Positions 4-55,400 of a stretch of 63,146 nt of DNA are shown piece by piece. The notes below the pieces were generated by a model. It was given only the letters and a program-made list of their open reading frames with translations. It was not told where the DNA came from and did no database searches. Position 1 is the first letter of the stretch; each line of letters starts with the position of its first letter. The translations under genes and the position numbers were made by a program. This DNA comes from Octopus sinensis (lineage: Eukaryota), in NCBI RefSeq assembly GCF_006345805.1, contig NW_021831867.1, positions 1 to 63,146 of the forward strand, read 5' to 3'.

Positions 4-1056
4 CAGTCAACCCTCTCTATAATGAACAAAATGTCCACGGTCAAAACAATGTTCATATTGTCTATAGTGAACAAAAGGAATCGAAATAACAATAAACAAT
101 ATTAAAGTATAATTACAAAGATTATTAGAGATTTTATATGTAATCGGTGATTTTTTGAGAATGATTAGTTTGAAATTTCTTAAAATTTTTTGTATTTCGT
201 ATACTTTTCTCTTTGTTCATAATCATTCTCAAGAAACATAAATTCAAGCGCCTTCGCATATTCACTAGCTCATATAGTGTCGGAACATAAATTTTTTCAT
301 CTTCCTCTTCAACTTGGTCTTGCTGTTTTAGTTTTCTCGCAAAGTTTTGTATAAAGTTTTCGTCGTCATTTGATCATTTTCATGAATCAAAAAATTTTCA
401 TCATCTATTTCTTCTATTTCTGTCAGGTTCTGTATTAACGCATTTTCAAATGCTTTCTTGAAACAATTGTAATTGTTAATTACCGACACTTCTAACCAAG
501 CTTGATTTATGAATATCAAGCAATTCAATAGAGTGAATTTCTTCAACTTTTCCGTAACTTTTTCGTGATCTACATTGTCATCATTAGTATAAAATTCAAT
601 CAAGTGTGCACATAGGAGTTGTCTATACCTGTCTTTGAATGATTTTATTATTCCTTGATCAAGGGGTTGTAACTTCGATGTTGTATTTGGAGGGAAAAAG
701 AGTTCGATGTTACTGAACTCTAAATCACGTGAGTGTACAGTTGCATATCAAGTAGAATTAGAATTTTTCTTTTTGCAAAATCATTTTTTGTTCAATTCTA
801 TGAGCCATTCTGAGAAATAACCATATGTCTTTCATGCTTTTTTATTTGATTTGTATTCCACTTGTAAATTATTAATTAAATTTCTTCTTCTTTTAAAGCA
901 GCGTGGATTTTTGGCTTTTCCAATAACAAATGGATCAAGTTTTTCTCCCATCATACTAACGCAAAACATAACAGTTACTCTTTCTTTTATCGGTTATTAG
1001 ACAGATTTTTGTATCGTAGTCGAACTACAAAAAACTCGTGCATTAAACTCGTGCAT
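4..1056 (-). mobile_element. pogo/Tigger DNA transposon, 3' part (transposase DDE_1 fragment plus terminal inverted repeat)
   Basis: TA followed by TIR-like CAGTCAACCCTCTCTATAATG at 2-24. Minus-strand translation with frameshifts gives KERVTVMFCV, KILILLD, FPPNTTSKLQPLDQGIIKSFK and AWLEVS..NCFKKAF, all pogo/Tigger motifs. The element is truncated at about 1056, where it joins the CEPT copy. Confidence 0.85.
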
Positions 1057-1783: not shown

Positions 1784-1864
1784 TACCGACAGTGGGATTC
1801 GAACCCACGAGGACATTGTCCAATGCATCTAAGTGCACCGCCTTAACCGCTCGGCCATATCGGT
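1784..1864 (-). tRNA. tRNA-Leu(UAA) copy with a 1-nt deletion in the anticodon loop
   Basis: Cloverleaf with acceptor ACCGATA/TGTCGGT, a long variable arm and T-loop TTCGAAT. The loop reads CTTAGA (6 nt) versus CTTAAGA in copy 2. Confidence 0.85.
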
Positions 1865-1915: not shown

Positions 1916-4044
1916 TTATTATTATAGCACTTTCACGAAAGCCATAATGTTTATAGCCCCGCATGTGCAACACTCAATGTAACGATATTTAAGGTTAGTT
2001 TTTTCCATTTTCCTCTGTCGTATGCGAGTGATCTTAATTCCTCCAGGTCGTCCCCCGTCTTTAGGTTTTTCCTCACTCGATTTAGGTCTTTGTTTAAGGC
2101 AGTTGGAAGTGTCGATCTAGGTCGTCCGCGGAAGGGTATGTCGCATCTGTCGAAGTAGTCTTCCATCGCTTTGTTAGCTGGTGCGTCCGGGTTCATTCTT
2201 AGTACATGCCCGAATAGCCTCCACCGGGCATCTACCACATCCCCGCTGATGCAGGAGCACATACACTTGTAGATACCATTGGTTGATATTCGACGTGGCC
2301 ACTCCATTCCGAGTAAGCTTCTTAGTTGCCTTCTATGGAATGAGTCCAGTTTCAGTAGATCGTTGAAGGAACATCCCCATGTCCCAGCGTTGTACAGCAG
2401 GATCGGTTTCACAAACGCGTTGTAGAGCCTGCATCTGATGCCAACTCCAAGTCCTTTGGCTCTTAGCCATCCTTTCTTCAGTTTCGCCAATGCCGAATTC
2501 GCCAGTGTTTTCCTCCTTAGTACATCTTCAGCGTCTCCCAGTAGGGATCCAAGCTTATTAGTGTGTCTCCATCTTTCATGGGTAGTATCATCTTCTCTTT
2601 GGATTTCCGTAATCTCAGTTTTGTTCACATTTACGCTGAGGACCCATTCCCAAGCTCCCAAGCTCCATAGGTGTTGGAGTGCGGTCACGTCCCGTGATAC
2701 GAAATCCACATCATCGGCATAGGATGTTTCTTTCTATGTCTCCCGTATAGCATTTACGGAGGTCGCGGAGTGCAGATTCAAGGTAGATGGTGAATAGTAG
2801 GGGGGAGAGAGAGTCACCCTGGAGTGTCCCAGTCGTTGTTTTGAAACTGCGGGAAGTTGCTCCTTCTGTCCTCACGAATAGTCTTGTGTTCGCAAGTAGT
2901 AGTCTGATTATTCTAACCGATGATTCATCCAGTATTTGCTCAAGCACATTCATCAGTTTCTGTATGTTATTGAGTCAAAGGCTCTGGAGAGATCTATTCC
3001 CAGCACGGTCGTTGTGCTCTTGAATCTTTGGTGCGTTGCGCAGCGCCATCTGTGGCTCCATACAATGTCTGCCGTAGACCTCCCATCTCGGAACCCACTT
3101 TGACTCGGTGATAGTATTGATCCGCCACACCCTTTATCCGCCTTAGTGCGACGTCTGCCAGCACCTTGCGTATCGAATTCAGGAGTATTATCGGGAGGAG
3201 ATTTTCTACGGGTCCTTTTGGTTTGTTGGATTTGTATGGGTATTAGTAATCCATTCCAAGTCCCAGATCGGTATTAGTTTCGAAAATTTCATTTAGGGTT
3301 TTTGCAATTGTGTCGCTGAGTTTTTTTGGCCCATATTTTAGGAGCTCGGGGCTTATGTTGTCCGGCCCAGCACTCTTGTTGTTCCTCAGTTTATTTATCG
3401 CTAGTTCCACTCTTCCGCTGTGATTGGGATTTTTAACGCTTTTGCATCTCCCTGGAAACAGGGAAAGTCCGTGTTTTCTATTCAGCAAGGTTTCGAAGTT
3501 TCGTGCGATCAGCTCTGCTTTTTCTTTTGGATTACCCACGAATTTTCCATCTTTGTCTTTAATGTGGAGGATGTTTTGTCCTTTCTTAGTAGTCCGCAGT
3601 AGTCGTAGGGCCGCATACATCCTTGAGTTGTCTTTTAGGCATTCCACATCTTTTAGTAGGGATGTAATGATTTCTCGTGAGTATTTTCGGTTCATCTTTT
3701 GGATTTTGCACTTTAGTTCCCTTGTTGGATGTTAAGCTCCTTTTTCTTAATCTCGTCTGCCGTGTTTGCGGCTTTTAGCCGTACCTCTCTGCGATGCTTT
3801 GCCATGTCTGGCACGTTCGGGTGGTGATCCAGTTTTAGGGCACAATGATTTCGGACTCCAAGGCATATACTGGCCGCCTTGGAGATTGCCCGCTTTGTTT
3901 GGTCCCACCGGGTTCGTAATGAAGTTCTGGTGTGGTTTTCTCCATAAGAGTCTCAATTGCTTGTGATAATTGTCTTTACAAGTGGGCTCCAGCCACAATT
4001 CTCTGCTGGAAGTGTATTTTGGCCTTTGTCTCGCCTTCTTCGCG
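1916..4044 (-). mobile_element. RTE-clade non-LTR retrotransposon, 5'-truncated, frameshifted RT
   Basis: GTLQGDSLSPLLF, YADDVDF, LDSFHRRQLR and RWRLFGHVLRM motifs; (TAA)n-like tail; 7-bp TSD TTTGTAT at 1909-1915 and 4045-4051; empty site in copy 2 near 30415. Confidence 0.92.
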
Positions 4045-4571
4045 TTTGTATATTTAGCTTCGTAATTTTTAATAGGTTTTTATCTCTTTTTTATTAGTAC
4101 TTTTTAATTTATCTCAAATCAATTTTCTTTCTCTTTCTAGATTGCCAATCTCTTAATAAGCATACTTATCCATCTCATAGGCCTGGCCTCTTTTGTTGTC
4201 GTTCTCATCTATCAAAGATTCTTCCGTTGCTCTATTTGTAAGCCGAGCCTTTCGGCGTTGCTCCGGCGGCATCATTCCAGCTTATGTCCCCATCCATACT
4301 CTCTAATGTTTTCCTGACAACCATCGACTGAATGTAAGCTCGTTTGGGTCCCTGAGACTGATTTAGTCGCAGTGATGTTTCTAGAATTTACTCACAACAT
4401 TTTAATGTTAGTAGAAATGGTGCTATAGTTACGCTGTGGATTACTCACAGTTCACAGATAGTAATCCATAAACCCTGCTTCCATACTATTGTAAAAAGGC
4501 AAGGCATTAAACAAATATGGGACACATAAATGCACTCAGTGGTTGCATGAGGTATAAAAAGGAAAAGCCTT

Positions 4572-4637
4572 GTCTGTCGATGTGGGTCACCTTCTCGCGG
4601 TGGCAGATAATAGTTCTATACTACGATAAGACTCACA
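4572..4637 (+). ncRNA. HDV-like self-cleaving ribozyme fold at the 5' end of the Ingi/Vingi-like LINE
   Basis: P1 GTCTGTC/GGCAGAT with a G1-U wobble, P2 TGTGGGTC/GACTCACA, P3 ACC/GGT around L3 TTCTCGC, P4 TAGT/ACTA, then C4624 leading J4/2. The elements occur in HDV order. Confidence 0.8.
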
Positions 4638-5450
4638 ACTACTCCCCTATCGAAGCCGTTGCTCCCAAAGGCCTCTTTGCTTATCAAACTCGCCCTTCTC
4701 CTTTCCGGAAACATTGAACCAAATCCTGTCCCCAGCAAGAAGACCCTATTACGTATCTTGCAGATCAACATCAATGGGATTGCTCCGAAGACTGCTGAAC
4801 TTTATTCCTTTCCTGGAGAAGCACGACATTCCTTTGTGCAAGAAACGAAGCTCTCGACCAAAAATCACTTTCCTGGATACTCATACGTCCGGCTGTGTAC
4901 TCCAATTCTGGCCCCTGTTACTTCTTTGAAGGTCATTTACGACCTAAATACTTTCCTCAAGGAATTATACAAAATTTCTCGCAAAGTTACAGCCACGAAG
5001 TAAACGCCCTTATAAAGACTCGTAACAAACTGAAACGGGAAAATGGATAGAACTGATGAATCTAAACAAACAAATCACTGCTGCCATACATCGCCCTCGA
5101 AATTATCGGTTATTTTCTTCCGACAATCAAACCTTCACCCGAAGTTATCTCTCTTTGGTTCTGACCTCCCACTATGCAAAAACCTACTATCCTCGGACTT
5201 ACTTTTGATCCAACTATGTCCTTCACATGTCTCTAACATTTCTGTCAAGGCAAACAGACGCAAAAACAAAGCAATAAGTGGTCACATTACAATAAGTTAT
5301 GCGAGTCCAAGCTGGGCGCCCTGCTTATCCATAAACTCGACAATGGCACTTCAATCAGTACAAAACAAGGCACAATATGTGGGTGTCTAAAATCAACCCC
5401 AATTGATAACCTCCACTGTGAAACAAACCTTTTGAAGATCATCTAATATG
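4572..5450 (+). mobile_element. Internally deleted Ingi/Vingi-like non-LTR retroelement (ribozyme, 2A-like peptide, APE and RT remnants)
   Basis: LLLSG(N/D)IEPNP(V/G)P, then LRILQININGI and VQETKL (APE), PTILGLTFDPTMSF and ISYASPSWAP..STPIDNLHCE (RT C-terminus). Total length is about 0.9 kb. The 3' end is approximate. Confidence 0.8.
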
Positions 5451-6125: not shown

Positions 6126-6951
6126 ATGGGCGACGAGAAAAGGTAGTAGATGAATGATAGAACTAGTAAACTTAATTAATTAGAAAATTATTTGTTGGTG
6201 GGTTAGCCTCAGAGACAAATAATGGTAATGGGTGTTAGAAATAGAAGAATCGATGAAGGCGTACTTTGGTCGGTTCGGTGAAGTGGAGGAGTGCATAGTG
6301 ATGACGAACGTGGAGACAGGGCAGTCGCGTGGATTTGGATTTGTGACATTCGAGTCTGCTTTGTCAGTGCAGAAAGTGATGGGTACATTGACGCACGTGG
6401 TGGATGGGAGGCAAGTGGACCCGAAGATGTGCAATCCGCGAGGGAAAGTAATAAGTTGGTGGAGTAGTGAAGGGTGGAGGAGATGGGTCGGACGGGAAGA
6501 TCTTCATAGGGGGACTGCCTGCGAACTGCACAGAGGAGACGATAAAGGCCTTTTTTTCGTACTACGGAAATGTGAGTGGTTGAATGACATGTGAGGTGAC
6601 GGACACTATTTTGATGATGGACCAGAACAGAGAACGCCACCGAGGGTTCGGATTCGTCACGTTCGATTCACAAGAGCCCGTCAACCGTCTGTGCATGGAG
6701 AGATACGTCGTCATTAGTGGCAAGAGAGTTGGCCCATCTTGTCAACGTAGGTCGAGTGCAAACTGGCTCAGCCACTCACTGGTCGTCGCACCACCCCTCG
6801 CTGGCCACGCCCATATCACATGCCTCTCTACCACTTTGGAGGGCTCACTGACTGGACTATGCAGGACTACTGGGACCAACAGTACCACTACGCACAACAG
6901 CAGTGGGCTGCACAACAAATGGGCTACCCTCCTCCCGACCAACCTAACTAG
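6126..6951 (+). CDS. Two-RRM RNA-binding protein (DAZAP1/Hrb27C/Musashi-like), 6 exons
   Basis: Spliced frame MGDEKRKLFVGGL..SRGFGFVTF..DGRQVDPK..KIFIGGLP..HRGFGFVTF..VECKLAQP followed by a Q/Y/W-rich tail. Five GT-AG introns of 41, 20, 25, 24 and 23 nt restore the frame. Confidence 0.9.
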
Positions 6952-7030
6952 TCCATTCTTTATTTGGCTTCTTGTTTGTTTTATTGTGGCCACCCTGTTC
7001 TAGTTGTCATGATAACCATCCTACTTTACA

Positions 7031-7683
7031 ATGTTCACTAATACTTTCCAAAGCGGCATGTTGTCCATTTTGTACAGCATTGGCAGTAAGCCACTCCAAA
7101 TATGGGACAAACAGGCACATCTCCTCTATCACCACCACAGGTCAAGAACGGACACATCAAGAGAATCACCGACAACGACATCCAGTCACTCGTCCTCGAG
7201 ATTGCCGGCACTAATGTCAGGTCCGCTCATTCCCCCCACTCCTTAGCACCACCTACATCACCTCACCACTATGGACGTCACTCTCGGCATCAAACTCCCC
7301 TTTCTTGTCATGATCATCAAAAACCTCAAAAAGTACTTCACCTTCGAAGTCCAAGTCCTCGACGACAAAAACGTCAAACGACGATTCCGTGCCAGCAACT
7401 ACCAAAGCACCACCCGAGTTAAGCCCTTCATCTGCACCATGCCCATGCGACTCGACGACGGGTGGAACCAAATACAGTTCAACCTGTCGGACTTCACCAG
7501 ACGTGCCTACGGGACTAATTACATCGAGACTTTGAGGGTCCAGGTCACTCCCTCTCCCCATTTTAGATCCATGCAAACTGCCGCATTCGACGAGTCTTTT
7601 TCTCCGAGAGGCTCTACTCCGAGGACGAACTCCCCGCAGAGTTCAAGTTGTATCTCCCCGTCCAGAACAAGGCTCGTTCTTAA
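7031..7683 (+). CDS. CFAP20: Cilia- and flagella-associated protein 20 (Bug22), copy 1; apparent 1-nt frameshift near 7265
   Basis: [83 protein letters not shown]. Introns are 26 nt (GC-AG), 26 nt and 23 nt. The segment after TYIT is 17 nt versus 18 nt in copy 2, so this is either an error or a lesion. Confidence 0.93.
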
Positions 7684-7862
7684 CACACTAATTCACTATT
7701 AACGCTAATATGTTCGGGTTATGATTGCTCATATCCTTTCCTTCAGACAAGTCCTGTTACATTAACTGAACTGCCATTATTCTATCCAGCATATTCGGGA
7801 GATCAATCAGTCCAAGATTTTGAATTTGACTGATTTTGTATCAAAAGTTCAAATGATAAATG

Positions 7863-9790
7863 GTAGTTTATAGAACGAATGCATTGTAGAGGCACAAACG
7901 AAGCGCAATCGTTACCGGCCTGTTAGCCACCCAATCCGTTTTTAGCCTGTTCAACGCGGCCGTCGATAGTACTTTCCTTCGGGTAATGTCCTCACTATCT
8001 CCGAGGAGTGTGCCCAGTTTTCTGGAATGTCTCCATTCATCATCTAGTCTTGAACTCATGCGTGCGACTTCCGTGATTTCCGTTTTGGTTGTGTTCACAG
8101 TGAGGAACCATTTTCCAAGCTCTGCTGGGGCAACATCAAGTAACCGCCTCAAGGCTGCTGTGTCGTGTGATACAAAATCCACATCGTCAGCGTATACAAT
8201 TTCGGTGATTTGTCCGTTATAAAAGAGCCTGAGATCACGCCTCCAGGTATATCACGAACAGCAAAGGGGAAAGGGAGTCTCCCTGAGGGGTACCCACTGT
8301 CGTCGAAAAATTCCTGGATGACGTACTCCCAATTTGTACTTTTAATTCCGTGTTCGACAATAGGACTTCTATCATCCTGACGCAATCCCCGTCGAGGAAT
8401 CCCCGCAAAACACTAATAAGTTTTCCTCGGCGAATTGTGTCGAAGGCTCTCGACATGTCGATCCCTAGAATTGTAGTCGCACTCTCGAATCTTTGGCAAG
8501 TAGCGCAACGCCATCTGTGTCCCCAGACCACATCAGCAGTAGATCTACCCGTCCTGAACCCACTGTGGTTCAAAGACAGGAATTCGTTCGCAGGCTCTTG
8601 TATACGGTCTAGAACCACGAGAGCAAGGACCTTTCTCAGCGTATTGAGTAGAATGACTGGTCGCAGGTTATCCACAGAGCCCATCTTCTTATTTGGTTTT
8701 TGAATCGGGACCAGAATTCCTTTGCCCAAAGGAAGAAGATCATTAGTTGTAAACATTTTGTTTAGTACTTTGGCCATGATTTCCATCAGTGTTTTAGGAC
8801 CTTATTTCAGTAACTCAGCACTTATACCATCCGGTCCCGGAGAGCGATTACTTTTCAGTCTATTCGTTGCTTTCATAACTTCTTCCACCGTGATTTCATT
8901 TATCAGGTTTGCCGGATTACTAATGATTAGGTCCACCTTTTCCCCGTCAACATTAAAAAGTCGCTCAAAATGAGTAGCAATAAGTTCTGCTTGTTCCGCA
9001 GCACCAAAATCATATTTCCGTTGTTGTCCTCGATCTTTAGTTTAATCTTTTGCTTCCTCCTCTTAAGCAACCTCATTGCTAAGAACATCTGTGCACAATC
9101 CTTTAGATTCTCCACTTCTTTTAGCCTGGCATCCAAAACGTTTGCAATGTGTTCGCTGTTTAACTTTTTGATCATTTTCTGTATCCTGGTGCGTTCCGAT
9201 TGTAAGAAAGTTTTCTGACCATATCCGTTGTGTTCTCTAGCGAGAGTCGGAGAGCCTTCTGTTTTGCAGCCATTGCAGGGACATCGGGATGGCATTGGTC
9301 TTTACAGCGTACATTGTACATTGTTCTATACAACTCCTCCTGTTGGGGGATCTCTGCTTCCGAAATTAAAAACCTTAACTCCTTCCACCGAAGACAACTG
9401 CGTATATTATGTGGGGTACAATGGCCGACCCGGATCAACAACGGGGCACTTTACCGTAAATGCTCAGCGCAACCTGTGATTCTGGATGTGATGGAAGCCC
9501 GATGGAGACTGTTCGGACATGTCCTACGGATGGACCAGACGTCACCCGCAAATTTGGCTATGGAAGAATATTTTGCCGCTAGTGGAAAGAAATTTTGGGG
9601 ACGCCCGCGCATTGCTCTACCGGAGGTGCTGGATGCTGACCTCAAATCAATCAACCGCAAGCTTAAAAATGGGATGATCTGGACGCAATGAGAAACTTAG
9701 CATGCAACAGGGGAGGTTGGACAAGGTATCAAGAAAATCGTTTCGTGGAAATATAACTATTATGTTTAAACTGGCGAATCAAACTAAACT
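7863..9790. mobile_element. RTE-clade retrotransposon with an inverted 5' part
   Basis: The minus strand from about 9315 to 7868 runs HPDVPAM..PQGDSLSPLLF..YADDVDF..LYNAFVL. The plus strand from about 9320 to 9750 continues IVLYNSSCWG..FHRRQLR..RWRLFGHVLRM. Absent from copy 2 (near 34361). Confidence 0.9.
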
Positions 9791-10089
9791 GGCGAGTAGG
9801 TAGACATCTCTGACTTAAAGGCGCTTCACTTTTCAGTAACTAATGTGCATGTCGAATGGTATCAAAAAAACTTTTACTGATACCATTAATCCCATCTCGC
9901 TACATATCCTTGTTGAATTCTGAATGTAACTCATTTTTGACAATGTAAACTAAATATTTATTGATTATTATAAAGAAGGAATCTGAATGTGACTGGTTTC
10001 TAAAATTTTGGATTGCCAAGGCAATAAATTTGAAAGATGCCTTCATCTCTCGTGAATTCGTGTGCGAATCGATTAGCGTTTGCAATGTC

Positions 10090-13419: not shown

Positions 13420-13491
13420 CCCGTGATAGCTCAGTGGTAGAGCGGAGGACTGTAGATCCTTAGGTCCCCGGTTCGAATCCGGGTCGCGGGA
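13420..13491 (+). tRNA. tRNA-Tyr(GUA), intronless
   Basis: 72-nt cloverleaf CCCGTGA..GAGGA-CTGTAGA-TCCTT..CCCGGTTCGAATCCGGG-TCGCGGG-A, followed by a TTTT terminator. Confidence 0.97.
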
Positions 13492-18014: not shown

Positions 18015-19720
18015 CTAGGTGATCCTGACGAATTTGATCATTGCTCTCAGCTTCGCTCTGTGCTGCTCTCTTGAGCCCACACAAGATTGTTGAGGGCGGA
18101 TCGTTCCTTTATACCATTGATGCCCTTTTGTATTCTTCTCAATGAGAGTTTCGAAAGAGATTGGTGGTTTGATAGCTTCACCTGTATACCACCTTTCGGT
18201 AAGTGTGAAAGCTTCTTTCTGGGTTGCGGAGATTTTACGGATGTTTGTATTCGAAATCAGTGGCCCCCATGAGGCACAAACATATGAGATACATGGTTCG
18301 ATATACTGTGAGTAGAGTGTTTTAAGTATAGGGTGATTTCCCATTTTCCATAGACCAGTTAGGCATTTCAGGAGGTTGATTTTCTTTTCACATTTGTTCA
18401 GCACATTTGTGACATGTTTAGAGAAGTTCATGTGCGTGTCATAAGTTAATCCCAATATCTTTTGCCATTTGCTGAAAGGTAATACTCTTTCCTCCACAAC
18501 AACTTCGATTGAAGTTTTCGATAGTCTTTTGGCTGAGGAGTAGAGAGTTGTGACAGATTTTTCTGTGTTGATCGACATCCGGTTTACGTTAAACCACTCA
18601 ACTAGGTGATCCAGGTTTTGTTGTAATCTTCCTTTTGCTGTTTGGATGTTCTGGTCCCGTGATGCCAATACAATGTCATCTGCATAGGCCAGAAGCAGAT
18701 CGCCATTAGGCGTCGGAATATCGGCCGTAAACAATTTGAATAGGAGAGGTGATAATGGTGAGCCCTGGGGTACACCATTTGGGAATAGACGGGAAATGGA
18801 ACGAATGTTTCCAAAGCATACTTTTCCTCTTCGACCGCTGAGGAAGTTAGTCAACCAGAGCTTGAGGTCTTCAGGGATGTTTGATTGGTAGATTTTCCAT
18901 GCTAGGTTTTTTCTAGGCACAGCGTCGAAGGCTTTGTGGATATCCAGCGAACAAAGTACAGTTTTCTGATGTCTTGGCTTGCACGAAATGCCAGAACGGA
19001 TAAAGTTAGTCAAGGAGCTAAGGAAGCTTGCAGTGGAACAATCTTTTTTGAATCCATGCTGTTAATGATTCTGTGAGGATGAGTTTTTCCAGAGTTTTTG
19101 ACGTGGAACATAATAGGGAAATTGGCCTGAAGGAGGCCGGGTCTTGTTTTGGTTTTCCACTCTTCAAAATTGGGCGGATGTTCGCCAATTTCCAAATCGT
19201 TGGGATTGAGTTGTAGTTAATCGACCAATTGTAGATTTTGTGAGAACACTGATTCCCTCATTCCCTATGTTTTTCAGGAGAATTATAGGAATGCCGTCGG
19301 GACCATGTGAATATGTTACTTTTGTTTGGTGTAGGGATTCCAATACTTCTTTTTCAGTGAAATGAGTTGAATGTTTACTTTTTAGCTTCCTTAGCGGCGG
19401 TTTGGAAGGGGCAGTCTTCATACGATCCTTGTAAGAGATTTTCGCGTAGTATTTTATTAAGGCATTTAGGTCTTTTTGGCTGAATTCGTCGTCTCCAGGT
19501 GTTTCCTCATTAGCCTTCGAGATGTTCCGAATAGATTTCCAGATCTCGGATGTCGACCGATTACGGTTTAGGGACGTAAGTACTTTCCTCCATTTCGCTC
19601 TTTGAGTTTTGAATTTACTAGCTTTTATTTCGTCGTTCAACAGTTTCAAACAGATTTTTGCATCGGGGTTCGGATCCCTACTTTTTTAAGACGATTTCTT
19701 TCCTTGACAAGAGACTTCCT
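18015..19720 (-). mobile_element. Ingi/Vingi/I-like LINE RT region, truncated at both ends (copy 2 about 43225-44920)
   Basis: LDIHKAFDAV, GVPQGSPLSPLLF, YADDIVL and KILGLTYD motifs; frameshifts. Confidence 0.88.
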
Positions 19721-19847: not shown

Positions 19848-22800
19848 ATATATGGTTGTTGTGTTGTTGTGCATGTCCGTTTTTATCAATAAGAAGAAAA
19901 CGAATCCCATGGGCCTTTCTGCAGAATCAAATAATAAAAACAGTATAGTGGATGCAGGAGTGTTGTCTCTGGGGCTGGATAACGGCACAAGAACTAATAT
20001 TAACAATAATCCTACAGTTGGAAGTCGTGCTGCACCAACTAACTTTCATTCCCTGTCCGCCATTATTAAGGATGTCAAGTGTGTCTCTGAGACTGAATGG
20101 GTGTCACAGGTGTTCTATGCTATCAAAGAAAGATTTGGAAGGATGCCTAGAGGTGGCTGGGATCTCATTCTGAAAGAGTTCAATGAAAAATACTTAAAGT
20201 GCTCAAGTCTATATCAACTAAAAAAATGGTCAAACCACTAAATGGGAATCAAAATGTAGGGAAAAGAGGCGATTGTAGTGAAGGAAAATCTAACATGAAT
20301 ATTGAAATTTCTAACTTCAAGAATTGCCTAGAAGAACTCAAAGTCCAACTCGAAAGAATCAAATCTATTCCTAGAGAGTCTCGAAAACCTACCCCAAAAA
20401 TCCAAAAAAATAAAGTGAAAACTAATATTCTGTCTGGATTGAATTCTACAATTTATCGTATTACAGAAGATAATCCTCCACAAAATATGGATCAGATTAC
20501 AGACATATTATATGCTGCACAGTGTGCTTATTTGGCATTAACTATAAGACCAAAAACAAAAAGCACATGGTTGGAAAACACAGAAAACAAAATTTCGAAA
20601 TTAGCAGCTGAAATTAAATTAGTGAATTCCTTTTCGAGACAAGCATTACCTCAATCTGAAAAGAAAAATGTAATGGATATTCTTTGCCGCTACGGATATA
20701 AGAAATCTAAGAAGGGAGAGCTAATGAGAATTGAGGCTTTAATGAATGATCTAATCAGAATTAAAGATAAACAAATATCCATTTATAACTCGAGGAAAGA
20801 GTTCCGAAAAGACAATGCGTGCTTCGAATTAAACCGCAGAAGGTTTTACCGAAACTTATCGTCGAATAATGAAGTAACCTTATATGGCTTTGATGATAAT
20901 GAGTGTTTGTTATTCTGGGAGGACGTCTGGAGAAAGAGAAATATGGATCACGTTTCGTATAATTGTGTGGATGTGAGGTCTACCGGTGGTGAAGCTATAG
21001 AACCTCAATTCACAAATGAGTTGGTTAAAGATATGCTCAAATATGTGCCTGATTGGAAGGCGTGCGGATGCGATGGAACATATAACTTTTTCATCAAGAA
21101 AATGGAATCATTACATGAATTCTTGTGTAATGAAGTAATCCGGATAATCAAGGGTGAGTACATGCCCGAGAGTTGGTTTTACACGGGATTAACTTACTTG
21201 ATTCTGAAAAAGGATGATTGTGAGAATCCAAAGGATTTACGTCCTATAACGTGTATGCCAACTTTGTACAAGCTTGTAACGAAGTGTGTGAATGCTAAAC
21301 TCTTTGACTTTGTGGATGGATTTGGGCTGATTTCAGACAATCAACTCGAAACCAGAAAGCAATGTCAGGGTGCGAAAGAGCAAGCATTTATTAATCAATG
21401 CTTGAACAAGGAATATGGAAACAGTCTGTACTCTGCTTGGGTGGATGTAAAGAAAGCCTTTGACTCGGTTGATCACCAATTTTTATTTCACATAATGGAC
21501 AGCTCTGGAATTCCACTCTGGATTATTAACTTTGTGAAAAGTATAGTCAAGAAGTGGAAAGTAAATCTACACCTTGATGAAGAAAAATTGGTTCAATAAA
21601 GCTAACTCGAGGAATTTTACAAGAGATTCATTATCCCCATTGCTATTTGTTATGGTAATGGATCCCCTAAGCAGGATCCTGAACTCTAAATTTCCCAAAT
21701 TGCAAATTAATCAGGAGGATCTAAATATGCTGACATATTCTACCAATCACCTATTTTTTATTGACGATCTAAAGATATTTGCTCTCAAAGAAGACACTGT
21801 TATTAAAATGGTGGAAGCTGTTAAAGAATTTTTCGACATTGTTGGCCTGGAGATGAACTCTGAAAAATCGGCCTCTAATGTCAAATCTTTATCATGCTGT
21901 GAGACTTTGGAAGGAATCAATGGATATCGCTATTTGGGAGTATTTGAAGATGGAGGAAGTAATGTCCTCAAGAATAAAGTTATGGATTCAATAATGGAGA
22001 ATGTAAAAAAAATAACTATGTTGTCAAAAACAAAATTGAATTCGGTGAATTTATTCTATGCCATAAATGAATATGCATTGTCCCTATATAATTATTATAT
22101 TGGGCTAATTAATATCGAGCCATATGAATTTGATGACATTGATAAACAAATACGTCGACTGCTCATGACACTCAAGTTACATTTCCAGCCTGCAAATAAA
22201 GAAAGGCTGTATTTAGACCGCAAAACTTTTGGAAGAGGACTTGCCTCCATCTCGTTCAAGAGCGAATTAATACTCATGCAATTTCTTAAAAGCTTGGAAA
22301 GACAGTCGGCTGTGTGTTTGCGAAGGTCGGGGATTCTGCGAGTTATTAAAACAAAGAAATGGCATTTGACTACAATCGCAGGATTTCTTACCTCTAAATA
22401 CGCTATTGCTGACACAGAAAGCATAGATATTAATTTTCTCCAAGACATTCAGAAAAAATATTTGCTAAACAAAATAAAGTCCAAGTACTACACTCTGTTA
22501 TGTTCAAATGCTTGAATGAATCAAATGTCGATCTTTCTACTTCCTCAGAATGGTTAGCCAAAGGAAATAATGGCCCCCGAAGTGAAGCATTATACTGCCT
22601 TCTGCAAGATAGAAATTTGTTTTTTGCAAACACGAGGCCGTTATGCAATCATTGTAAAAAAAGTAAACAAACTGTTGATCATCTGGCCACACAGTGTGGT
22701 AAAATGCTCAATAGCGATTACCTCCGAAGACATGACGAGGTGGTTAAATGTGTCCATCTTCATATTTGTCGAATGTATGGAATCAAAAAGAACAGGAAAT

Positions 22801-23456
22801 TAAAGACTCATTCAGTTCAGTCGATATTGTCAACTCAAAATGTAGAAATTAAAGTTGACACGTCAATTATAACAGAAAATAAAGTCAACTTCAATAAACG
22901 GATATCTTTGTTTATGACAAGATTAAAAAGGAAATAACCTTAATCGAGGTGGGCATAACATCTCAGGACCGCTTAAAACAAGTGGAAGTTGAGAAACTTC
23001 AAAATATGATTTCCTTGCAAATGAACTGTCACTACTCTACGAATGCCAAGTTAAAATTATTCCTGTGGTTCTGACCTGGGATGGTGTTGTCACAAGATGC
23101 TTCAAAAATTATATGGATAAACTATATATTGAAAAATCTACAATGACATACATCCAATCGATTGTGCTCAAAAGGACGCTAGAGAGCATGATAATTGAAC
23201 ACAAGCATGGAATGAAGATAACTGGCGAGGAATATACCTCTGCGACCGATCAACTAGTAGAAATGGCATGCCGCCAGGAATTCATTCAAAGATAAAAGAC
23301 GCACAACAACCGACGCAGAGATAGAGAATGAAGAGGAACAAGCAGCAGACTCTTCTCCTAAAAGGAGAAGAGAGACTATCAATCAGGATTGAAAGTCCTA
23401 ATTAATTAAATATTTTAATCTTAATTAAATTTTGGTTTCGTAAATAAACGTCTTAA
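19848..23456 (+). mobile_element. R4/Dong-like RLE non-LTR retrotransposon, near full length (copy 2: 45050-48655)
   Basis: RT motifs LRPITC, VDVKKAFDSV, GILQGDSLSPLLF and FIDDLK; CCHC finger CNHC..VDHLATQC; RLE KPDI..LIEVGIT..EKL. Candidate 12-bp TSD TTAAATTTATAT at 19836-19847 and 23457-23468. Indels differ between the two copies. Confidence 0.9.
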
Positions 23457-27240: not shown

Positions 27241-28329
27241 CCTAAGCAGTGACAATAATTAATGTTATAAATTAGGACTGTTCAGGAATGCCACATTTCC
27301 TGCCAAATGTGACCTGAGTGCAATAATCAGGCGACCACTCGAATGGAAACAACCCTTCCTCTGACAAATACAGTCAACACGTCATACCCATAAAAAAGCC
27401 GGCCGAACACTGCTGGGTTGCCACCCTAGCATTGCTGTCATACACAAGCGAGGTTGTGCACTTTACATCCTTCTAATTCACATAATACAAACTACCCCAT
27501 TTACAAATTCCACACGAGAAGGTTTTTCAGTATTTTCAAACTAAATTTTGATTAATAAAAATACTTTAATGTTGGGGGAAACATTCTTTGGTTGAATCGA
27601 CGTGGTGATCTCCAACTCAATGTCAGACAAATCGGAAACATCAAAGGATAACTCATCTCTACACAACATCAAATCATTACACCCAACATTTCCCGTTTTC
27701 TGAGTCTATAAGCCTCAGGAACAACATATTCTCCCTCCTCTCTCCTATTTGATGGGGTAAATACGAGTCCATCGAGCTTAAATATATCCACGCAGTCACC
27801 TTAGTGTCGTCATCTCCTCTTTTTTGTCTGATTTGAGTATTTTTTGACATTTGTTTGGTAGGCGGGGGTCTCTGAGAGGTCACATGAACTACTTTCGAAG
27901 GCACGTGCTCTGATTGAGGTCCACTTGTGGGCTTGGATTTCTTTTTTCCGTATTCTTGCCATTGTGTCTGATCAGGTAAGAGGAACTTGGCCTACAGTGC
28001 CCTCTCTGATGGAGGATATGGCTTTGGAGACCATTTGTTGGTTGTCCTTGAGGGAGGTTATTGCTGTCGTTTCTGAGCATCCAGTTTGATTCATTATTTG
28101 TTTAACTTGTTCGGAGAAAGCAGAGCTGTCCATTTGTCAGTTAAAGTCTATTTTGATTGTAATAAATAACTACAGCACAAATCAATATTACACGTTATTG
28201 ATAATGTATTTATTTGTAAATTAAAAATATATTTTAATAATAATTAAATATATTTGAACTAAAATTACTGGCTGTTGATCTAAAAATAGTCTAATGTACA
28301 CTAAAGCACATAAAAACGGTAATTATTTT

Positions 28330-30276: not shown

Positions 30277-30358
30277 TACCGACAGTGGGATTCGAACCCA
30301 CGAGGACATTGTCCAATGCATCTTAAGTGCACCGCCTTAACCGCTCGGCCATATCGGT
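30277..30358 (-). tRNA. tRNA-Leu(UAA)
   Basis: 82-nt type II cloverleaf with anticodon arm GTGCA-CTTAAGA-TGCAT. Confidence 0.96.
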
Positions 30359-30926
30359 GTTTATTTCATTTTATTACTTTTAAAAACTAACTTCATATTT
30401 ACGCTATTTGTATATTTAGCTTCGTAATTTTTAATAAATTTTTATCTCTTTTTTATTTGTACTTTTTAATTTATCTCAAATCAATTTTTTTTCTCTTTTT
30501 AGATTGCCAATCTCTAAATAAGCATACTTATCCATCTCATAGGCCTGGCCTCTTTTGTTGTCGTTATCAAAGATTCTTCCGTTGCTCTATTTGTAAGGCG
30601 AGTCTTTCGGCGTTGCTTCGGCGGCATCATTCCAGCTTATGTCCTCATCCATACTCTCTAATGTTTTCCTGACAACCATCGACTGAATGTAAGCTCGTTT
30701 GGGTCCCTGAGACTGATTTAGTCGCAGTGATGTTTCTAGAATTTACTCACAACATTTTCATGTTAGTACAAATGGTGCTATAGTTACGCTGTGGATTACT
30801 CACAGTTCACAGATAGTAATCCATAAACCCTGCTTCCATACTATTGTAAAAAGGCAGGACATTAAACAAATATGGGACACATAAATGCACTCAGTGGTTG
30901 CATGAGGCATAAAAAGGAAAACCCTT

Positions 30927-30992
30927 GTCTGTCGATGTGGGCCACCTTCTTGCGGTGGAAGATGATAGTTCTATACTACGAAAAGACTTACA
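30927..30992 (+). ncRNA. HDV-like ribozyme fold, copy 2
   Basis: Same fold as 4572-4637. P1.1 is intact here (L3 TC pairs with GA at 30964-30965), but there is one P1 mismatch and one P2 mismatch. Confidence 0.7.
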
Positions 30993-31995
30993 ACTACTCC
31001 CCTATCGAAGCCGTTGCTCCCAAAGGCCTCTTTGCTTATCAAACTCGCCCTTCTCCTTTCCGGAGACATTGAACCAAATCCTGGCCCCAGCAAGAAGACC
31101 CTATTACGTATCTTGCAGATCAACATCAATGGGATTGCTCCGAAGACTGCTGAACTTTATTCCTTTCCTGGAGAAGCACGACATTCCTTTGGTGCAAGAA
31201 ACGAAGCTCTCGACCAAAAATCACTTTCCCTGGATACTCATACATCCGGCTGTGTACTCCAATTCTGGCCCCTGTTATCTCTTGGAAGATCATTTACGAC
31301 CTAAATTCTGACCACAACCCGATTATTATTGAGAATGCCCTAAAATCAAACATCGACATTCAACGGCGTTGTTATACGAATTACAAAAGAGATTCCTGGG
31401 ACGACTACTGTCTCGCTCTAGAAAAATCATTGAATGATTTCGACATTATCAACTTTCGTCTGACTGACGCAGCAGTCAATTATGCACTTCCCACTTCCAA
31501 AAAATTCATTCCTCAAGGAATTATACAAAAATCTCCCAAAGTTACAGCCAAGGAGTAAACGCCCAAAGACCCGTAACAAACTGAAACGGGAAAATGGATA
31601 GAACTGATGAATCTAAACAAACAAATCACTGCTGCCATAAATCGCCCTCGAAATTATCGGTTATTTTCTTCCGACAATCAAACCTTCACCCGAAGTTATC
31701 TCTCTTTGGTTCTGACCTCCCACTATGCAAAAACCCTACTATCCTCGGACTTACTTTTGATCCAACTATGTCTTTCACATGTCTCTAACATTTCTGTCAA
31801 GGCAAACAGACGCAAAAACAAAGCAATAAGTGGTCACATTACAATAAGTTATGCGAGTCCAAGCTGGGCGCCCTGCCTATCCATAAACTCGACAATGGCA
31901 CTTCAATCAGTAAAAAACAAGGCACAATATGTGGGTGTCTAAAATCAACCCCAATTGATAACCTCCACTGTGAAACAAACCTTTTGATGATCATC
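30927..31995 (+). mobile_element. Internally deleted Ingi/Vingi-like LINE, copy 2, with intact 2A motif
   Basis: GDIEPNPGP at 31062-31088; APE start LRILQININGI and APE end SDHNPII; RT C-terminal remnants. Confidence 0.82.
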
Positions 31996-32664: not shown

Positions 32665-33492
32665 ATGGGCGACGAGAAAAGGTAGTAGATGAATGATAGA
32701 ACTAGTAAACTTAATTAATTAGAAAATTATTTGTTGGTGGGTTAGCCTCAGAGACAAATAATGGTAATGTGGGTGTTAGAAATAGAAGAATCGATGAAGG
32801 CGTACTTTGGTCGGTTCGGTGAAGTGGAGGAGTGCATAGTGATGACGAACGTGGAGACAGGGCAGTCGCGTGGATTTGGATTTGTGACATTCGAGTCTGC
32901 TTTGTCAGTGCAGAAAGTGATGGGTACATTGACGCACGTGGTGGATGGGAGGCAAGTGGACCCGAAGATGTGCAATCCGCGAGGGAAAGTAATAAGTTGG
33001 TGGAGTAGTGAAGGGTGGAGGAGATGGGTCGGACGGGAAGATCTTCATAGGGGGACTGCCTGCGAACTGCACAGAGGAGACGATAAAGGCCTTTTTTTCG
33101 TACTACGGAAATGTGAGTGGTTGAATGACATGTGAGGTGACGGACACTATTTTGATGATGGACCAGAACAGAGAACGCCACCGAGGGTTCGGATTCGTCA
33201 CGTTCGATTCACAAGAGCCCGTCAACCGTCTGTGCATGGAGAGATACGTCGTCATTAGTGGCAAGAGAGTTGGCCCATCTTGTCAACGTAGGTCGAGTGC
33301 AAACTGGCTCAGCCACTCACTGGTCGTCGCACCACCCCTCGCTGGCCACGCCCATATCACATGCCTCTCTACCACTTTGGAGGACTCACTGACTGGACTA
33401 TGCAGGACTACTGGGACCAACAATACCACTACGCACAACAGCAGTGGGCTGCACAACAAATGGGCTACCCTCCTCCCGACCAACCTAACTAG
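32665..33492 (+). CDS. Two-RRM RNA-binding protein, copy 2
   Basis: Same exon structure as 6126-6951, with intron 2 of 22 nt; frame open to TAG. Confidence 0.9.
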
Positions 33493-33572
33493 TCCATTCT
33501 TTATTTGGCTTTCTTGTTTGTTTTATTGTGGCCACCCTGTTCTAGTTGTCATGATAACCATCCTACTTTACA

Positions 33573-34226
33573 ATGTTCACTAATACTTTCCAAAGCGGCA
33601 TGTTGTCCATTTTGTACAGCATTGGCAGTAAGCCACTCCAAATATGGGACAAACAGGCACATCTCCTCTATCACTACCACAGGTCAAGAACGGACACATC
33701 AAGAGAATCACCGACAACGACATCCAGTCACTCGTCCTCGAGATTGCCGGCACTAATGTCAGGTCCGCTCATTCCCCCCACTCCTTAGCACCACCTACAT
33801 CACCTGTCCTATGGACTTGTCCACTCTCGGCATCAAACTCCCCTTTCTTGTCATGATCATCAAAAACCTCAAAAAATACTTCACCTTCGAAGTCCAAGTC
33901 CTCGACGACAAAAACGTCAAACGACGATTCCGTGCCAGCAACTACCAAAGCACCACCCGAGTTAAGCCCTTCATCTGCACCATGCCCATGCGACTCGACG
34001 ACGGGTGGAACCAAATACAGTTCAACCTGTCGGACTTCACCAGACGTGCCTACGGGACTAATTATATCGAGACTTTGAGGGTCCAGGTCACTCCCTCTCC
34101 CCATTCTAGATCCATGCAAACTGCCGCATTCGACGAGTCTTTTTCTCCGAGAGGCTCTACTCCGAGGACGAACTCCCCGCAGAGTTCAAGTTGTATCTCC
34201 CCGTCCAGAACAAGGCTCGTTCTTAA
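33573..34226 (+). CDS. CFAP20: CFAP20 (Bug22), copy 2, frame intact
   Basis: Spliced frame reads [19 protein letters not shown] through to NKARS*. Three tiny introns, the first GC-AG. Confidence 0.95.
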
Positions 34227-35049
34227 CACACTAATTCACTATTAACGCTAATATGTTCGGGTTATGATTGCTCATATCCTTTCCTTCAGACAAGTCCTGT
34301 CACATTAACTGAACTGCCATTATTCTATCCAGCATATTTGGGAGATCAATCAGTCCAAGATGTAGGTAGACATCTCTGACTTAAAGGCGCTTCACTTTTC
34401 AGTAACTAATGTGCGATGTCAAATGGTATCAAAAAAACTTTCACTGATACCATAATCCTATGTCGCTACATATCCTTGTTGAATTCTGAATGTAACTCAT
34501 TTTTGACAATGTAAACTAAATATTTATTGATTATTATAAAGAAGGAATCTGAATGTGACTGGTTTCTAAAATTTTGGATTGCCAAGGCAATACATTCGAA
34601 AGATGCCTTCATCTCTCGTGAATTCGTGTGCGAATCGATTAGCGTTTGCAATGTCAGAGTCTTATCAAAAGAAAATTCCTAGATTTTAACTCAAACACAT
34701 TTTTAATGTAGAGAGAAAAACAGTAAAATTCAGTAAGGGAAATATCATGGTATGGTGTGCCATATGGATTCAGTAATTTGGTTGGGATAAAAGAAAAGAT
34801 GGATGGAGCTTTGTATGTTAACATACAAACGAATAATCTTATCTCATTTCTGAGCAAAATCGAAATTAAATTCCCAACAAGACAATGATCCGAAACATAC
34901 TTCGGCAATAACAAGGCGCTTTTTTCAAATAAATAATATCTAATAAATAATATCGAATTACTAGTCTAATTCATGCTTGTTCAGTTTTTATTTTTCTGAC
35001 TGATCGACTGGTTGGCCACCCCTGGTTCACCGCCACTTTTTTGCACTGT

Positions 35050-38001: not shown

Positions 38002-38073
38002 CCCGTGATAGCTCAGTGGTAGAGCGGAGGACTGTAGATCCTTAGGTCCCCGGTTCGAATCCGGGTCGCGGGA
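38002..38073 (+). tRNA. tRNA-Tyr(GUA), intronless, copy 2
   Basis: Identical to 13420-13491. Confidence 0.97.
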
Positions 38074-52481: not shown

Positions 52482-55400
52482 ATGGAGACAGTCAACCACA
52501 TTTCGACCTGCCTGAAACAACTATTGACAACCAGTTCCCAGTTGTACGAGAGGGGGTGTTACTCGGCGGATAGAATACGACACAGCCTGACACACCATTT
52601 GACAGCACTGCAGGAGGTGATGTCATCAAGAGAGGAAGGGAAGGTGACACAACTGCTGAGGCGGATGGACTACCTGCGTCCCAAGAACACATCATTCTGC
52701 CTCCTTGTTGACTACAAAGTGAAGTCGTGCCTTATTGGTAGAGTCAACTCAAGGAGGGAGATCGAGTGCAGTTTATGGAGATGGATGGACTCGACGACTA
52801 CTTGGTTGCCTCCCTAATGTCATTGCAGGTGGAGACTGCGAAGGGGGACAGAATCTCCATTCCGTGGCTGTTTGTCCAAGACGAGAGTCTAAGCGAGTGA
52901 GTGCTTAAGGCAACATGCTTAATCGATCGAGACTGATTTGTTTATAATTATTCGCAGAATCAAACGAGAACTGATGGAGTTTTACGAAAAGATAACCTTC
53001 AGGAAGAACAGCAATGAGGGCACTCATAACATGACCACTGGATATGTCCAAATCACCTCCACCAACACACAGTACGCCTCCAAGTCATACATCTGGACAA
53101 AGTGAGGGTCCTCCTTATTCCAGTCCACATTCAGTCCTGTCCATTTCCGAGAGGCCCGAAAGGATGTTCCGAGAGAGATTGGTCGTGGAGGTGAGACTGG
53201 ATGCACTCCCTGCCCCAATCGACCTCACGTGTGCTATAGACAGAGGGCATTTGGCCATTCTTGGACAAGACCTGTTTGCGGTCAAACAACCAAATGACTC
53301 GTATTCCCTCACCACCACCACCGAATTGGTTTCCCAGAGGAGACTCCGCTTGGTCGTCCTCCCACCAAACACACAACCCCCACAACCAAACTTTGGTCTT
53401 GTCTTCTCAACCCTTTCGGAGAATTGTTCCCAAATGTCCTGGGAGACACTGAATCCCCAAATCACTCCACTGGAAGGACACAGTCCCCCGCCCTTGGAGG
53501 ACTGCGATGACTATCAAGTGAGAGGGGACTTGTTTGTATTTGTGGACCATCGACAACACGGACGGGTTTGCTCAGTGCAGGAAGCTTTCGGGGAAGAAAG
53601 ACTGTCATTGGAGCACGTCCACTCTCTTGTGAAGACATTCTTCGACAACAGCCTGTCGCCCCCCGTCTACCACGCACATTGGAAGTGCCTCTGCTCACTC
53701 CCACTGCCTGCCTGTCAGAATGACTTTGTGCTGAGGGATGTGTGTTCCCCCCACCTCCTCATCACACAATGCCTCACTCTCGCATTGACCAGACCATTGT
53801 GGGACTATCCTCTGTCCAGGTCAATCACGCTGAAGGAAGCACTCCTCACGTTTCTGATAAACATGACCTGGTTTTCCTTCCGCTGTGGGATAAAGGAAAC
53901 ATTCGAGTCATTCTATAAAGTATACACCTGTCCCCGTGGGTGGTGGAACAAACGAACTCTCCGATTGTTCTTTGATTTGGTTACTCCCACGTTCTTCCCA
54001 CCCTCCCCCCTCTGTCCCCACACAACATACTGTCTGAGGAATCAACAAATGGGCACGTTGACTGCATTCGCCCAGGGACTCACCAACAAGTCTCCTCAAC
54101 AAGTCATTCATGAACTCAGTCTGTCCCTCCCAACAAGACCTGCCTTTGCTAAGGGCAGTGTCGGGGAAATTACTAAATTTAATATATTCGGGCAGGACTT
54201 TGTACTCTCAGAGTCCCTCATTTCGCGGAATGTGGTCTCCTTTATGGTGAGACAGGAATGTGAATTGTTGTATGACTTCAATTCGGGGGTGGCATACTTT
54301 CTGGGCAGCCAACTGATCGTGCAGTATTTGACTGAGTTGTTAGTCAAGTTGGCCGACGAGTGGGGCATCCAATCATGGGACTGCAAAGTAATCATTTGAG
54401 TGATTGGACAAAGAGGGAGACCGAGTCACTCATTCGAGACATGGACATGTACCGGCGGGCAGTCATTACATATAGTCCTCACCCCCCTCCTTCCAATTTA
54501 ATTCACACTCTCCAAAAGGTCGGCCAACTCATTCAAATTAGACATTGGACTACTTCCACGCTGGGAAGGAAGCCTTGGACTACACAGACTGGTCGTGCGA
54601 GGTGTTCAGAGGACTGGTTGAGGATTGTGAGGCACTCCTGTCGTCCATCGAGAAAGAGGCGGGCAACGTGTCTTCAGTCAAGGATTTGGAGAATAAAATG
54701 AAAAATGGAAAGCGAGAGTTCATTTTGAAAGTGGAGCAAGTTCAAAATAAATATCGGGTAAAGTATATATTATTAATTTAAAATTGTCTCTTTGGCAATA
54801 ACCCATCCTTAGGACACAATCACGTCCAGTTGGCCCAACAACAAAATCGCGGAAAACTGCATGAGTCACATTTATCTTCCCTCAACGACCAGTTCAGCCA
54901 AGTCGATTCTCCACCGCTTCGAAGAATTGGCGGATTGTTTAGAACAAATTACCCGCCGGGCAGACACACTATGTCGAGAAAAGGAAGGCGAGTTGGAACG
55001 GATAAAAAACAAGTTCATTCTCTTCCGGACTGATCTGTCTGCTCTGTCTTCGAGGATTGACAGCCAATCAGACGACGTGGTCACAGAAATCGCAGAAATA
55101 GGCAAACAAGTGAGGGAGGAGTGGCAAGTGGCAGAAAGACTAAAAAATGAGATCGAGGACATGATTAAAGTAGTTTAAGAACTGCTGATTGTGACAGTCC
55201 GATCCTTCTCTCGGAGATTTGCTGAATAATGCGCTCGCCGTGTTGGCCAATGCAGTCGCCTTGAAGGGCGTGGTGGCAGACTTGTCGAGTCTGGCAGGAA
55301 AGCACTCAACCAAGTATTGACTGTGTTGGTGACTGTCCCAGACTGGAGCCACTCGAAAGAATTATCAAGGAAACTGCCGACTTGTTTCAGACTGGTTTAA

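Follow-up and report, generated by a model that had tools for sequence, protein, structure and literature searches.

In a 63,146-nt stretch of the Octopus sinensis genome (the window), we identified an HDV-like fold which is probably the decayed 5′ ribozyme of a LINE that encoded a 2A peptide, an endonuclease and a reverse transcriptase (RT) and that resembles the CR1/L2/Jockey group; in the living element, it would have cleaved itself. Release from host transcripts by an HDV-like ribozyme is well established for promoter-less LINEs. With this candidate, the mechanism would reach a cephalopod as well as a 2A-bearing group of CR1/L2/Jockey-like LINEs; the literature that we searched has no account of HDV-like ribozymes from cephalopods or other molluscs, from CR1-clade LINEs or from 2A-bearing CR1/L2/Jockey-like LINEs.

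The fold (copy 1) is a nested double pseudoknot with the HDV order P1-J1/2-P2-P3-L3-P3′-P1′-(P1.1)-P4-J4/2-P2′, in which all helices are fully paired (Table 1). A pair table made by script recovered every pairing that an earlier note on this DNA had listed, at the same coordinates, and bore out its remark that J4/2 is longer than the canonical form, as CGATAA has 6 nt compared with 4-5 nt in two other LINE families described below (CCAA in L003 and CAAAT in L009). A G.U wobble at +1 closes P1 (G4572.U4608), likewise in L003-L005 and L009. Active R2 HDV-like ribozymes have a P1 of 6-7 bp with mismatches, and once of 4 bp, a P2 of at least 5 bp that is often mismatched, a variable P4, a J1/4 of 0-2 nt and few invariant bases (PMC3774820), and the deviations of the window fold fall in this published range. 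The C and G of L3, which are conserved in the R2 survey, are both present in copy 1. A TATAAAA sequence lies at 4553-4559, 13-19 nt upstream of G4572 (CATAAAA at 30908-30914 in the second copy), which is too near for this base to be the transcription start of a canonical TATA box.

Table 1. Positions of the HDV-like fold, its parts and the associated features (window coordinates unless a locus is named; differences of copy 2 are in copy-1 coordinates)
Feature	Position	Strand	Description
HDV-like fold, copy 1	4572-4637	+	GTCTGTC-GA-TGTGGGTC-ACC-TTCTCGC-GGT-GGCAGAT-AA-TAGT-TCTAT-ACTA-CGATAA-GACTCACA; from sequence, pair table, strict descriptor and shuffles
P1, copy 1	4572-4578 / 4602-4608		GTCTGTC / GGCAGAT; 7 pairs, including G4572.U4608 and U4577.G4603
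J1/2, copy 1	4579-4580		2 nt
P2, copy 1	4581-4588 / 4630-4637		TGTGGGTC / GACTCACA; 8 pairs, one of them G.U
P3, copy 1	4589-4591 / 4599-4601		ACC / GGT
L3, copy 1	4592-4598		TTCTCGC
J1/4, copy 1	4609-4610		P1.1 of 1 bp, U4593-A4610
P4, copy 1	4611-4614 / 4620-4623		TAGT / ACTA; 4 bp, 3 of them A-U
J4/2, copy 1	4624-4629		CGATAA, 6 nt; candidate catalytic C4624 directly 3′ of P4
ATG in J1/2-P2	4580-4582	+	matches the position of the L003-family ATG
2A-like codons, copy 1	4677-4733	+	LLIKLALLLSGNIEPNPVP; broken by D>N at 4710 and G>V at 4729 (SGNIEPNPVP)
AP-endonuclease, N-terminal part	4734-4904	+	ILQININGI...QETKL...GYSYVR; frameshifted
RT, C-terminal segment	5168-5372	+	ILGLTFD...YASPSWAP...QNKA; P0003 aa 701-791
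Segmental duplication, half with copy 1	1057-25750		partner 29549-50606; self-blastn
HDV-like fold, copy 2	30927-30992	+	duplication paralogue; fails the strict descriptor
2A-like codons, copy 2	31032-31088	+	LLIKLALLLSGDIEPNPGP; D(V/I)ExNPGP intact
Endonuclease C-terminal end and linker	31157-31519	+	SDHNPI; P0003 aa 221-338
Copy 2 difference, T>C	4587		C.A mismatch in P2
Copy 2 difference, C>T	4596		L3 CG becomes TG
Copy 2 difference, C>A	4604		G.A mismatch in P1
Copy 2 difference, A>G	4609		P1.1 becomes 2 bp
Copy 2 difference, T>A	4627		J4/2 becomes CGAAAA
Copy 2 difference, C>T	4634		P2 pair kept as G.U
L003-family folds	L003:1495-1560; L004:1609-1674; L005:1550-1615
L009 fold	848-917		third family, with 2A, PHD and endonuclease; textbook fold

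The HDV-family models of Rfam (HDV ribozyme, CPEB3, drz-Agam and HDV-F-prausnitzii) share the topology of the hand-drawn fold but gave no match in 600-nt pieces around either copy, at the gathering score or at E<=10, and none to the relative L003, even at E<=10; in the window, Rfam found four tRNA genes and nothing else. Since these models cover narrow sequence families, we wrote descriptors of our own. The strict descriptor asked for a G1.U, at least 6 contiguous pairs in P1, at least 6 perfect pairs in P2, a P3 of 3 bp, an L3 of the form ....CG. and a J4/2 of the form C..A.A. The fold was its sole match on both strands of the window (126 kb), and 200 dinucleotide shuffles gave a mean of 0.24 matches per shuffled window, so that the strict descriptor alone is not decisive. 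When the thresholds were raised to the observed quality (P1 7/7, P2 at least 8 pairs, P4 at least 4 bp abutting the C), none of 1000 dinucleotide-shuffled windows had a match on either strand, a statistic that is generous to the candidate because descriptors and thresholds were tuned post hoc, after it had been seen.

An A/T-rich window of 63 kb that is scanned by eye could yield one drawable HDV fold by chance. Loose descriptors, which were far too permissive, indeed gave about 18 starts in the window, the strict one retains its background in shuffled sequence, and the nested MFE of the fold was unremarkable (z = -1.4), which we take as neutral evidence in itself; it also predicts a competitor hairpin in which the 5′ strand of P2 pairs with L3/P3′. 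We consider coincidence highly unlikely all the same, in view of the empty shuffles at the observed quality, the location of the fold and the recurrence of the same architecture, in the same place, in two more LINE families. Only ~6e-4 strict matches would be expected in the 300 nt that precede the 2A codons on the sense strand (0.24 x 300/126,292), and the best fold in this interval scored 59, whereas 60 shuffles reached at most 46. A second loose match with the same spacing, at 28012-28077, was dismissed as a chance match, with four of its seven P2 pairs being G.U, no CG in L3 and no P4.

The fold lies on the sense strand of a LINE remnant, ~100 nt upstream of the 2A/endonuclease reading frame and 40 nt before the 2A codons. 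The codons equivalent to NPGP occupy 4722-4733 in copy 1, directly followed by the N-terminus of the endonuclease, and copy 2 has the motif SGDIEPNPGP at 31062-31088, D(V/I)ExNPGP being the definition of the 2A motif (PMC3708506). The segment at 4734-4904 was assigned by tblastn with P0003 aa 40-112 and P0001 aa 19-89, and also by phmmer matches. With the full-length relative P0003 (889 aa) as reference for the retained parts, the RT core (aa ~339-700) and the middle of the endonuclease domain are deleted from the window element, and frameshifts are present. Copy 1 further lacks ~196 nt matching 31306-31502 of copy 2, at the end of the endonuclease and in the linker, and the equivalent of the RT C-terminal segment in copy 2 is located at 31717-31924. 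We searched for a target-site duplication, a 3′ tail and a tandem repeat of the element and recognised none.

A search for homologous proteins with the 80-aa N-terminus gave no match, and we therefore conducted an exhaustive phmmer search followed by profile searches. The phmmer search returned 140 relatives at ~40% identity, many of which start with LLLLxSGD(V/I)xxNPGP followed by the endonuclease domain, and a profile of the 2A/endonuclease N-terminus collected 251 proteins. None of the relatives found exceeded ~45% protein identity, so there was no independent copy of the octopus family to compare. The best full-length relatives (P0003, P0021, P0028 and P0099) carry endonuclease and RT without RNase H, together with the CR1/L2-type C-terminal motif YASPxW, which the window element retains as YASPSWAP. 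LINEs of the Ingi clade also have RNase H. Because its best relatives lack this domain, the window LINE looks CR1/L2/Jockey-group-like, and the Ingi/Vingi affiliation proposed earlier is not shown, given this lack, the CR1/L2-type motif and the deletion of the RT core. The 2A peptide alone is not clade-specific, since it occurs in the Rex1, Crack, L2, L2A, CR1 and Ingi clades, molluscs included (PMC3708506). RT fragments of the RTE/I/Ingi type at 1916-4044 and 7819-9796 do not belong to this element; they are separate insertions, found in the copy 1 half only.

The window contains a tandem segmental duplication of ~25 kb, with 96-99% identity and several indels between its halves (self-blastn of the window), and both halves carry paired tRNA-Leu and tRNA-Tyr genes. 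An ORF of the window (53044-54399) has exact matches on two contigs of the O. sinensis assembly GCA_006345805.1. The two copies of the fold are paralogues created by this duplication and not independent family members. As the earlier note had it, copy 2 restores a 2-bp P1.1 and has one mismatch each in P1 and P2; the change at 4596, which that note did not mention, removes the L3 C (TTCTTGC) at a position among the few conserved ones in a survey of 26 R2 ribozymes (PMC3774820). The consensus of the two copies is fully paired as claimed, and it cannot count as covariation because the copies are duplication paralogues; it probably means only that the pre-duplication sequence was intact. Six of the 66 positions of the motif differ between the copies, compared with 23/527 upstream (16 substitutions and a 7-bp indel) and 9/312 downstream, that is, ~3-4% in the flanks, and no compensatory change was found among the six differences. 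This pattern indicates no constraint since the duplication. Both window copies are dead, decayed relics with no obvious consequence for the host locus; judged by their lesions, copy 2 is probably inactive and copy 1 might have some residual activity.

Homology between the two copies extends upstream past 4572, to 4045/30407, so the 5′ end of the element is unreadable from these duplication paralogues, and the claim that the fold marks the true 5′ end could not be sustained within the window, where the boundary is hidden. When 4045-4571 was compared with the remaining window by sensitive blastn, no further copy appeared, and the upstream flank is thus not identifiable as another repeat.

We therefore turn to relatives elsewhere, where the HDV-like fold has counterparts in two other families of 2A-bearing LINEs, once at a mapped 5′ boundary. 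These folds were drawn from the ENA assemblies ERZ26859072 and ERZ26222911. One abundant family, with hundreds of copies in its genome, contributed three independent insertions from a single ENA assembly, L003, L004 and L005. Their homology begins at the G of GTCCGAATGG (blastn starts at 1491-1495, 1608-1609 and 1546-1549), with no common sequence before the G of GTCCGAATGGAAGTTGCCTCTTCGCGGCCGGAT, and this shared first G is, give or take a few nt, G1 of the 66-nt fold in all three. G1 is thus the first base of the insertions, as 5′ self-cleavage predicts. The fold of this family has P1 GTCCG/CGGAT (5 bp with a G.U at the base), P2 GGAAGTT/AACTTCT, P3 GCC/GGC, L3 TCTTCGC, a P4 of 8 positions, one of them mismatched, and J4/2 CCAA. 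Since P1 is short and P1.1 is absent, the L003 family is a weaker example, with scores of 45-49 against shuffle maxima of 41-47.

The third family, represented by L009, has P1 GGTTCC/GGAACT (6 bp, G.U), a perfect 7-bp P2 GATCTCG/CGAGATC, a 3-bp P3 GCC/GGT, L3 TACTCGT, a P1.1 of 2 bp, a P4 of 7 bp and J4/2 CAAAT, and its score of 61 exceeds the shuffle maximum of 43. A structure-guided alignment, covering three lineages only, showed that the sequences of P1, P2 and P4 differ between the families and yet are paired in each, and that L3 keeps T..TCG(C/T). The MAFFT alignment of the six folds was not in structural register, and pair tables were therefore made by script. For L006, L007, L008, L012 and L013, some of which are short contigs, the descriptor found no fold, and inspection by eye gave a common GCCAAAC-like motif with no convincing parse. 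L010 and L011 are 5′-truncated copies and were unusable for mapping the 5′ end. With no fold recovered by the descriptor at five related loci and two others truncated, the association is frequent and not shown to be universal.

In several members of the L003 family, the ORF runs from the ATG embedded in the fold in frame into 2A (P0141, P0143, P0162 and P0167). The frame opened by the window ATG (MWVTFSRW...) stops at ~4715 and, judging from the reading frames, would be one frameshift away from the 2A frame; the leader would be ~51 aa in the window, compared with 57 aa in the L003 family. This arrangement suggests a module consisting of a ribozyme with an embedded AUG, a leader, 2A and the endonuclease-RT protein, in which 2A would release the leader.

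The likeness between the window and the L003 family might instead reflect conservation of the leader peptide (MWVTFSRW and MEVASSRP) and not of an RNA structure, as both peptides are in frame with the shared ATG and have M, V, S and R in common. We regard this as very improbable indeed: the window frame stops before 2A, third codon positions are among the identical bases (TCG CGG), the ORF of L009 starts 84 nt downstream of its fold, and helix partners that are far apart co-vary between the families.

A conserved and HDV-shaped 5′ module of 2A LINEs could also serve another purpose, for instance as an internal promoter, as a site where translation starts without a cap or as a site of protein binding, and not cleave itself efficiently. 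Both the window fold and that of the L003 family contain the ATG, from which the L003-family ORF continues into 2A, and this would suit such a role, as would the 5-bp P1 and missing P1.1 of the L003-family fold and the failure of the Rfam HDV-family models to match. In addition, the 77 nt of Pr77 of L1Tc act as both promoter and ribozyme (PMC3383444), and the two functions therefore need not be exclusive. What has been retained is nevertheless the catalytic core of HDV, namely the G.U at the first base, the CG of L3, the C 3′ of P4 and the A-rich J4/2, and the first base of the insertions is G1, as cleavage predicts. A module without efficient cleavage thus appears unlikely to us, and we prefer a 5′ ribozyme.

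If the preferred ribozyme reading is right, the living element would have been transcribed within a longer host transcript, and the ribozyme would have cut directly 5′ of G1 (G4572), leaving the exact 5′ end of the template with a 5′-OH and no cap. Translation would have started at or near the AUG in J1/2-P2 (4580-4582). The LINE would have been a single ORF with an N-terminal 2A, the fold forming its first ~66 nt, and ribosome skipping at 2A would have freed a short leader, derived from the ribozyme and the 5′ region, from the endonuclease-RT protein. Decay removed the RT core and most of the endonuclease domain from the window copy and brought in frameshifts, and the remnant was then passively copied along with the segmental duplication. 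The paralogues have drifted since: copy 1 retains P1, P2, P3, L3 and C4624, with P1.1 weakened and 2A broken, and copy 2 retains P1.1 and 2A, with lesions in P1, P2 and L3.

By architecture, one close likeness is to L1Tc/NARTc of Trypanosoma cruzi (PMC3185411, PMC3383444, PMC5814959), where an HDV-like fold occupies the first ~70 nt of a single-ORF LINE of the endonuclease type, as is proposed for the window LINE. The first 77 nt of L1Tc are a promoter and an HDV-like ribozyme, followed by 2A (PMC3383444, PMC5814959), so that 2A comes closely after the fold, at the N-terminus of the endonuclease-RT protein, as in the window. NARTc is an internally deleted derivative that keeps the 5′ module, and the window element does so too. 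In contrast to L1Tc, the window host is a metazoan, a cephalopod, and the best relatives of the window LINE lack RNase H and have the CR1/L2-type C-terminal motif. The R2, R4, R6, SART, Baggins and RTE elements reportedly also have HDV-like ribozymes at their 5′ ends (Eickbush & Eickbush 2010; Ruminski et al. 2011). The window candidate shares with them the fold, the proposed place at the extreme 5′ end and the proposed role, which is release from a co-transcript and possibly cap-independent translation. A short P1, a variable P4 and few invariant bases are tolerated there as well (PMC3774820). Unlike those elements, the window LINE bears 2A, is not site-specific, is CR1/L2/Jockey-like and comes from the phylum Mollusca, and its fold is compact, with 66 nt, a 2-nt J1/2 and an embedded AUG.

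Metazoan endonuclease-type LINEs with 2A (Odon et al. 2013, PMC3708506) carry the same D(V/I)ExNPGP motif N-terminally in their long ORF, and the endonuclease follows either directly or after a PHD finger. Their hosts include the molluscs oyster, limpet and sea hare, with cephalopods absent from the list, and that paper contains no mention of ribozymes. A ribozyme at the exact 5′ end, an AUG in J1/2-P2, a leader and 2A might form a module that heads many metazoan 2A LINEs, as one heads L1Tc of trypanosomes, with 2A discarding the leader that the ribozyme and 5′ region would necessarily encode when translation begins on an uncapped, self-cleaved RNA; we offer this broader reading tentatively, as possible and short of probable. 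If true, it would link the 5′ ribozymes and the N-terminal 2A of metazoan LINEs, so far described separately, and ribozyme-terminated LINEs would then be known from molluscs and from the CR1/L2/Jockey group as well. The recurrence of 5′ ribozyme, embedded AUG, leader and 2A in three LINE families suggests a testable reason for the presence of an N-terminal 2A in single-ORF LINEs.

We also observed other elements in the window. In its second half, the duplication carries an intact tRNA-Leu(UAA) gene on the minus strand (30277-30358). The paralogue of this gene at 1784-1864 (minus strand), reported as 'tRNA-???' by ARAGORN, has lost a base in the anticodon loop and is therefore probably a pseudogene. 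The two tRNA-Tyr(GUA) genes (13420-13491 and 38002-38073) lack introns and have the same sequence. The insertion at 1916-4044 (minus strand) is a 5′-truncated LINE that lies ~50 bp from the tRNA-Leu paralogue. It has a target-site duplication of 7 bp (TTTGTAT), and its tail, on the 1916 side, is A/T-rich and resembles a microsatellite. The C-terminus of its RT is of the LLYNAGTWG type, as in the RTE/I/Ingi-like group, and since it is present in copy 1 only, the insertion is younger than the duplication. The second insert confined to copy 1, at 7819-9796, has pieces of RT in both orientations, with Pfam RVT_1 at 8235-8786 (minus strand) and an RT C-terminus at 9230-9691 (plus strand), and may represent a LINE insertion that was inverted or twin-primed.

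On the strand of the LINE remnant and just 3′ of it, fragments of an RRM protein (6232-7003) and of CFAP20 (7271-7702), both without introns, adjoin each other, with counterparts at 32761-33583 and 33811-34245; the CFAP20 fragment covers positions 68-165 of 185 of Pfam CFA20_dom (E = 2.7e-44). The pair could be chimeric retrocopies that arose via template switching by a LINE. Two further LINEs are located inside the duplication, at 19852-22937 (plus strand) and 18015-19649 (minus strand), and the strict descriptor found no HDV-like fold at either. One of them has an RT followed by a C-terminal CCHC-type motif, without an AP-endonuclease (R2/NeSL-like), and the other is CR1-like. Finally, inverted repeat pairs with 95-99% identity lie ~10 kb apart, at 14754-14839/25408-25493 and 15661-15924/25142-25409.
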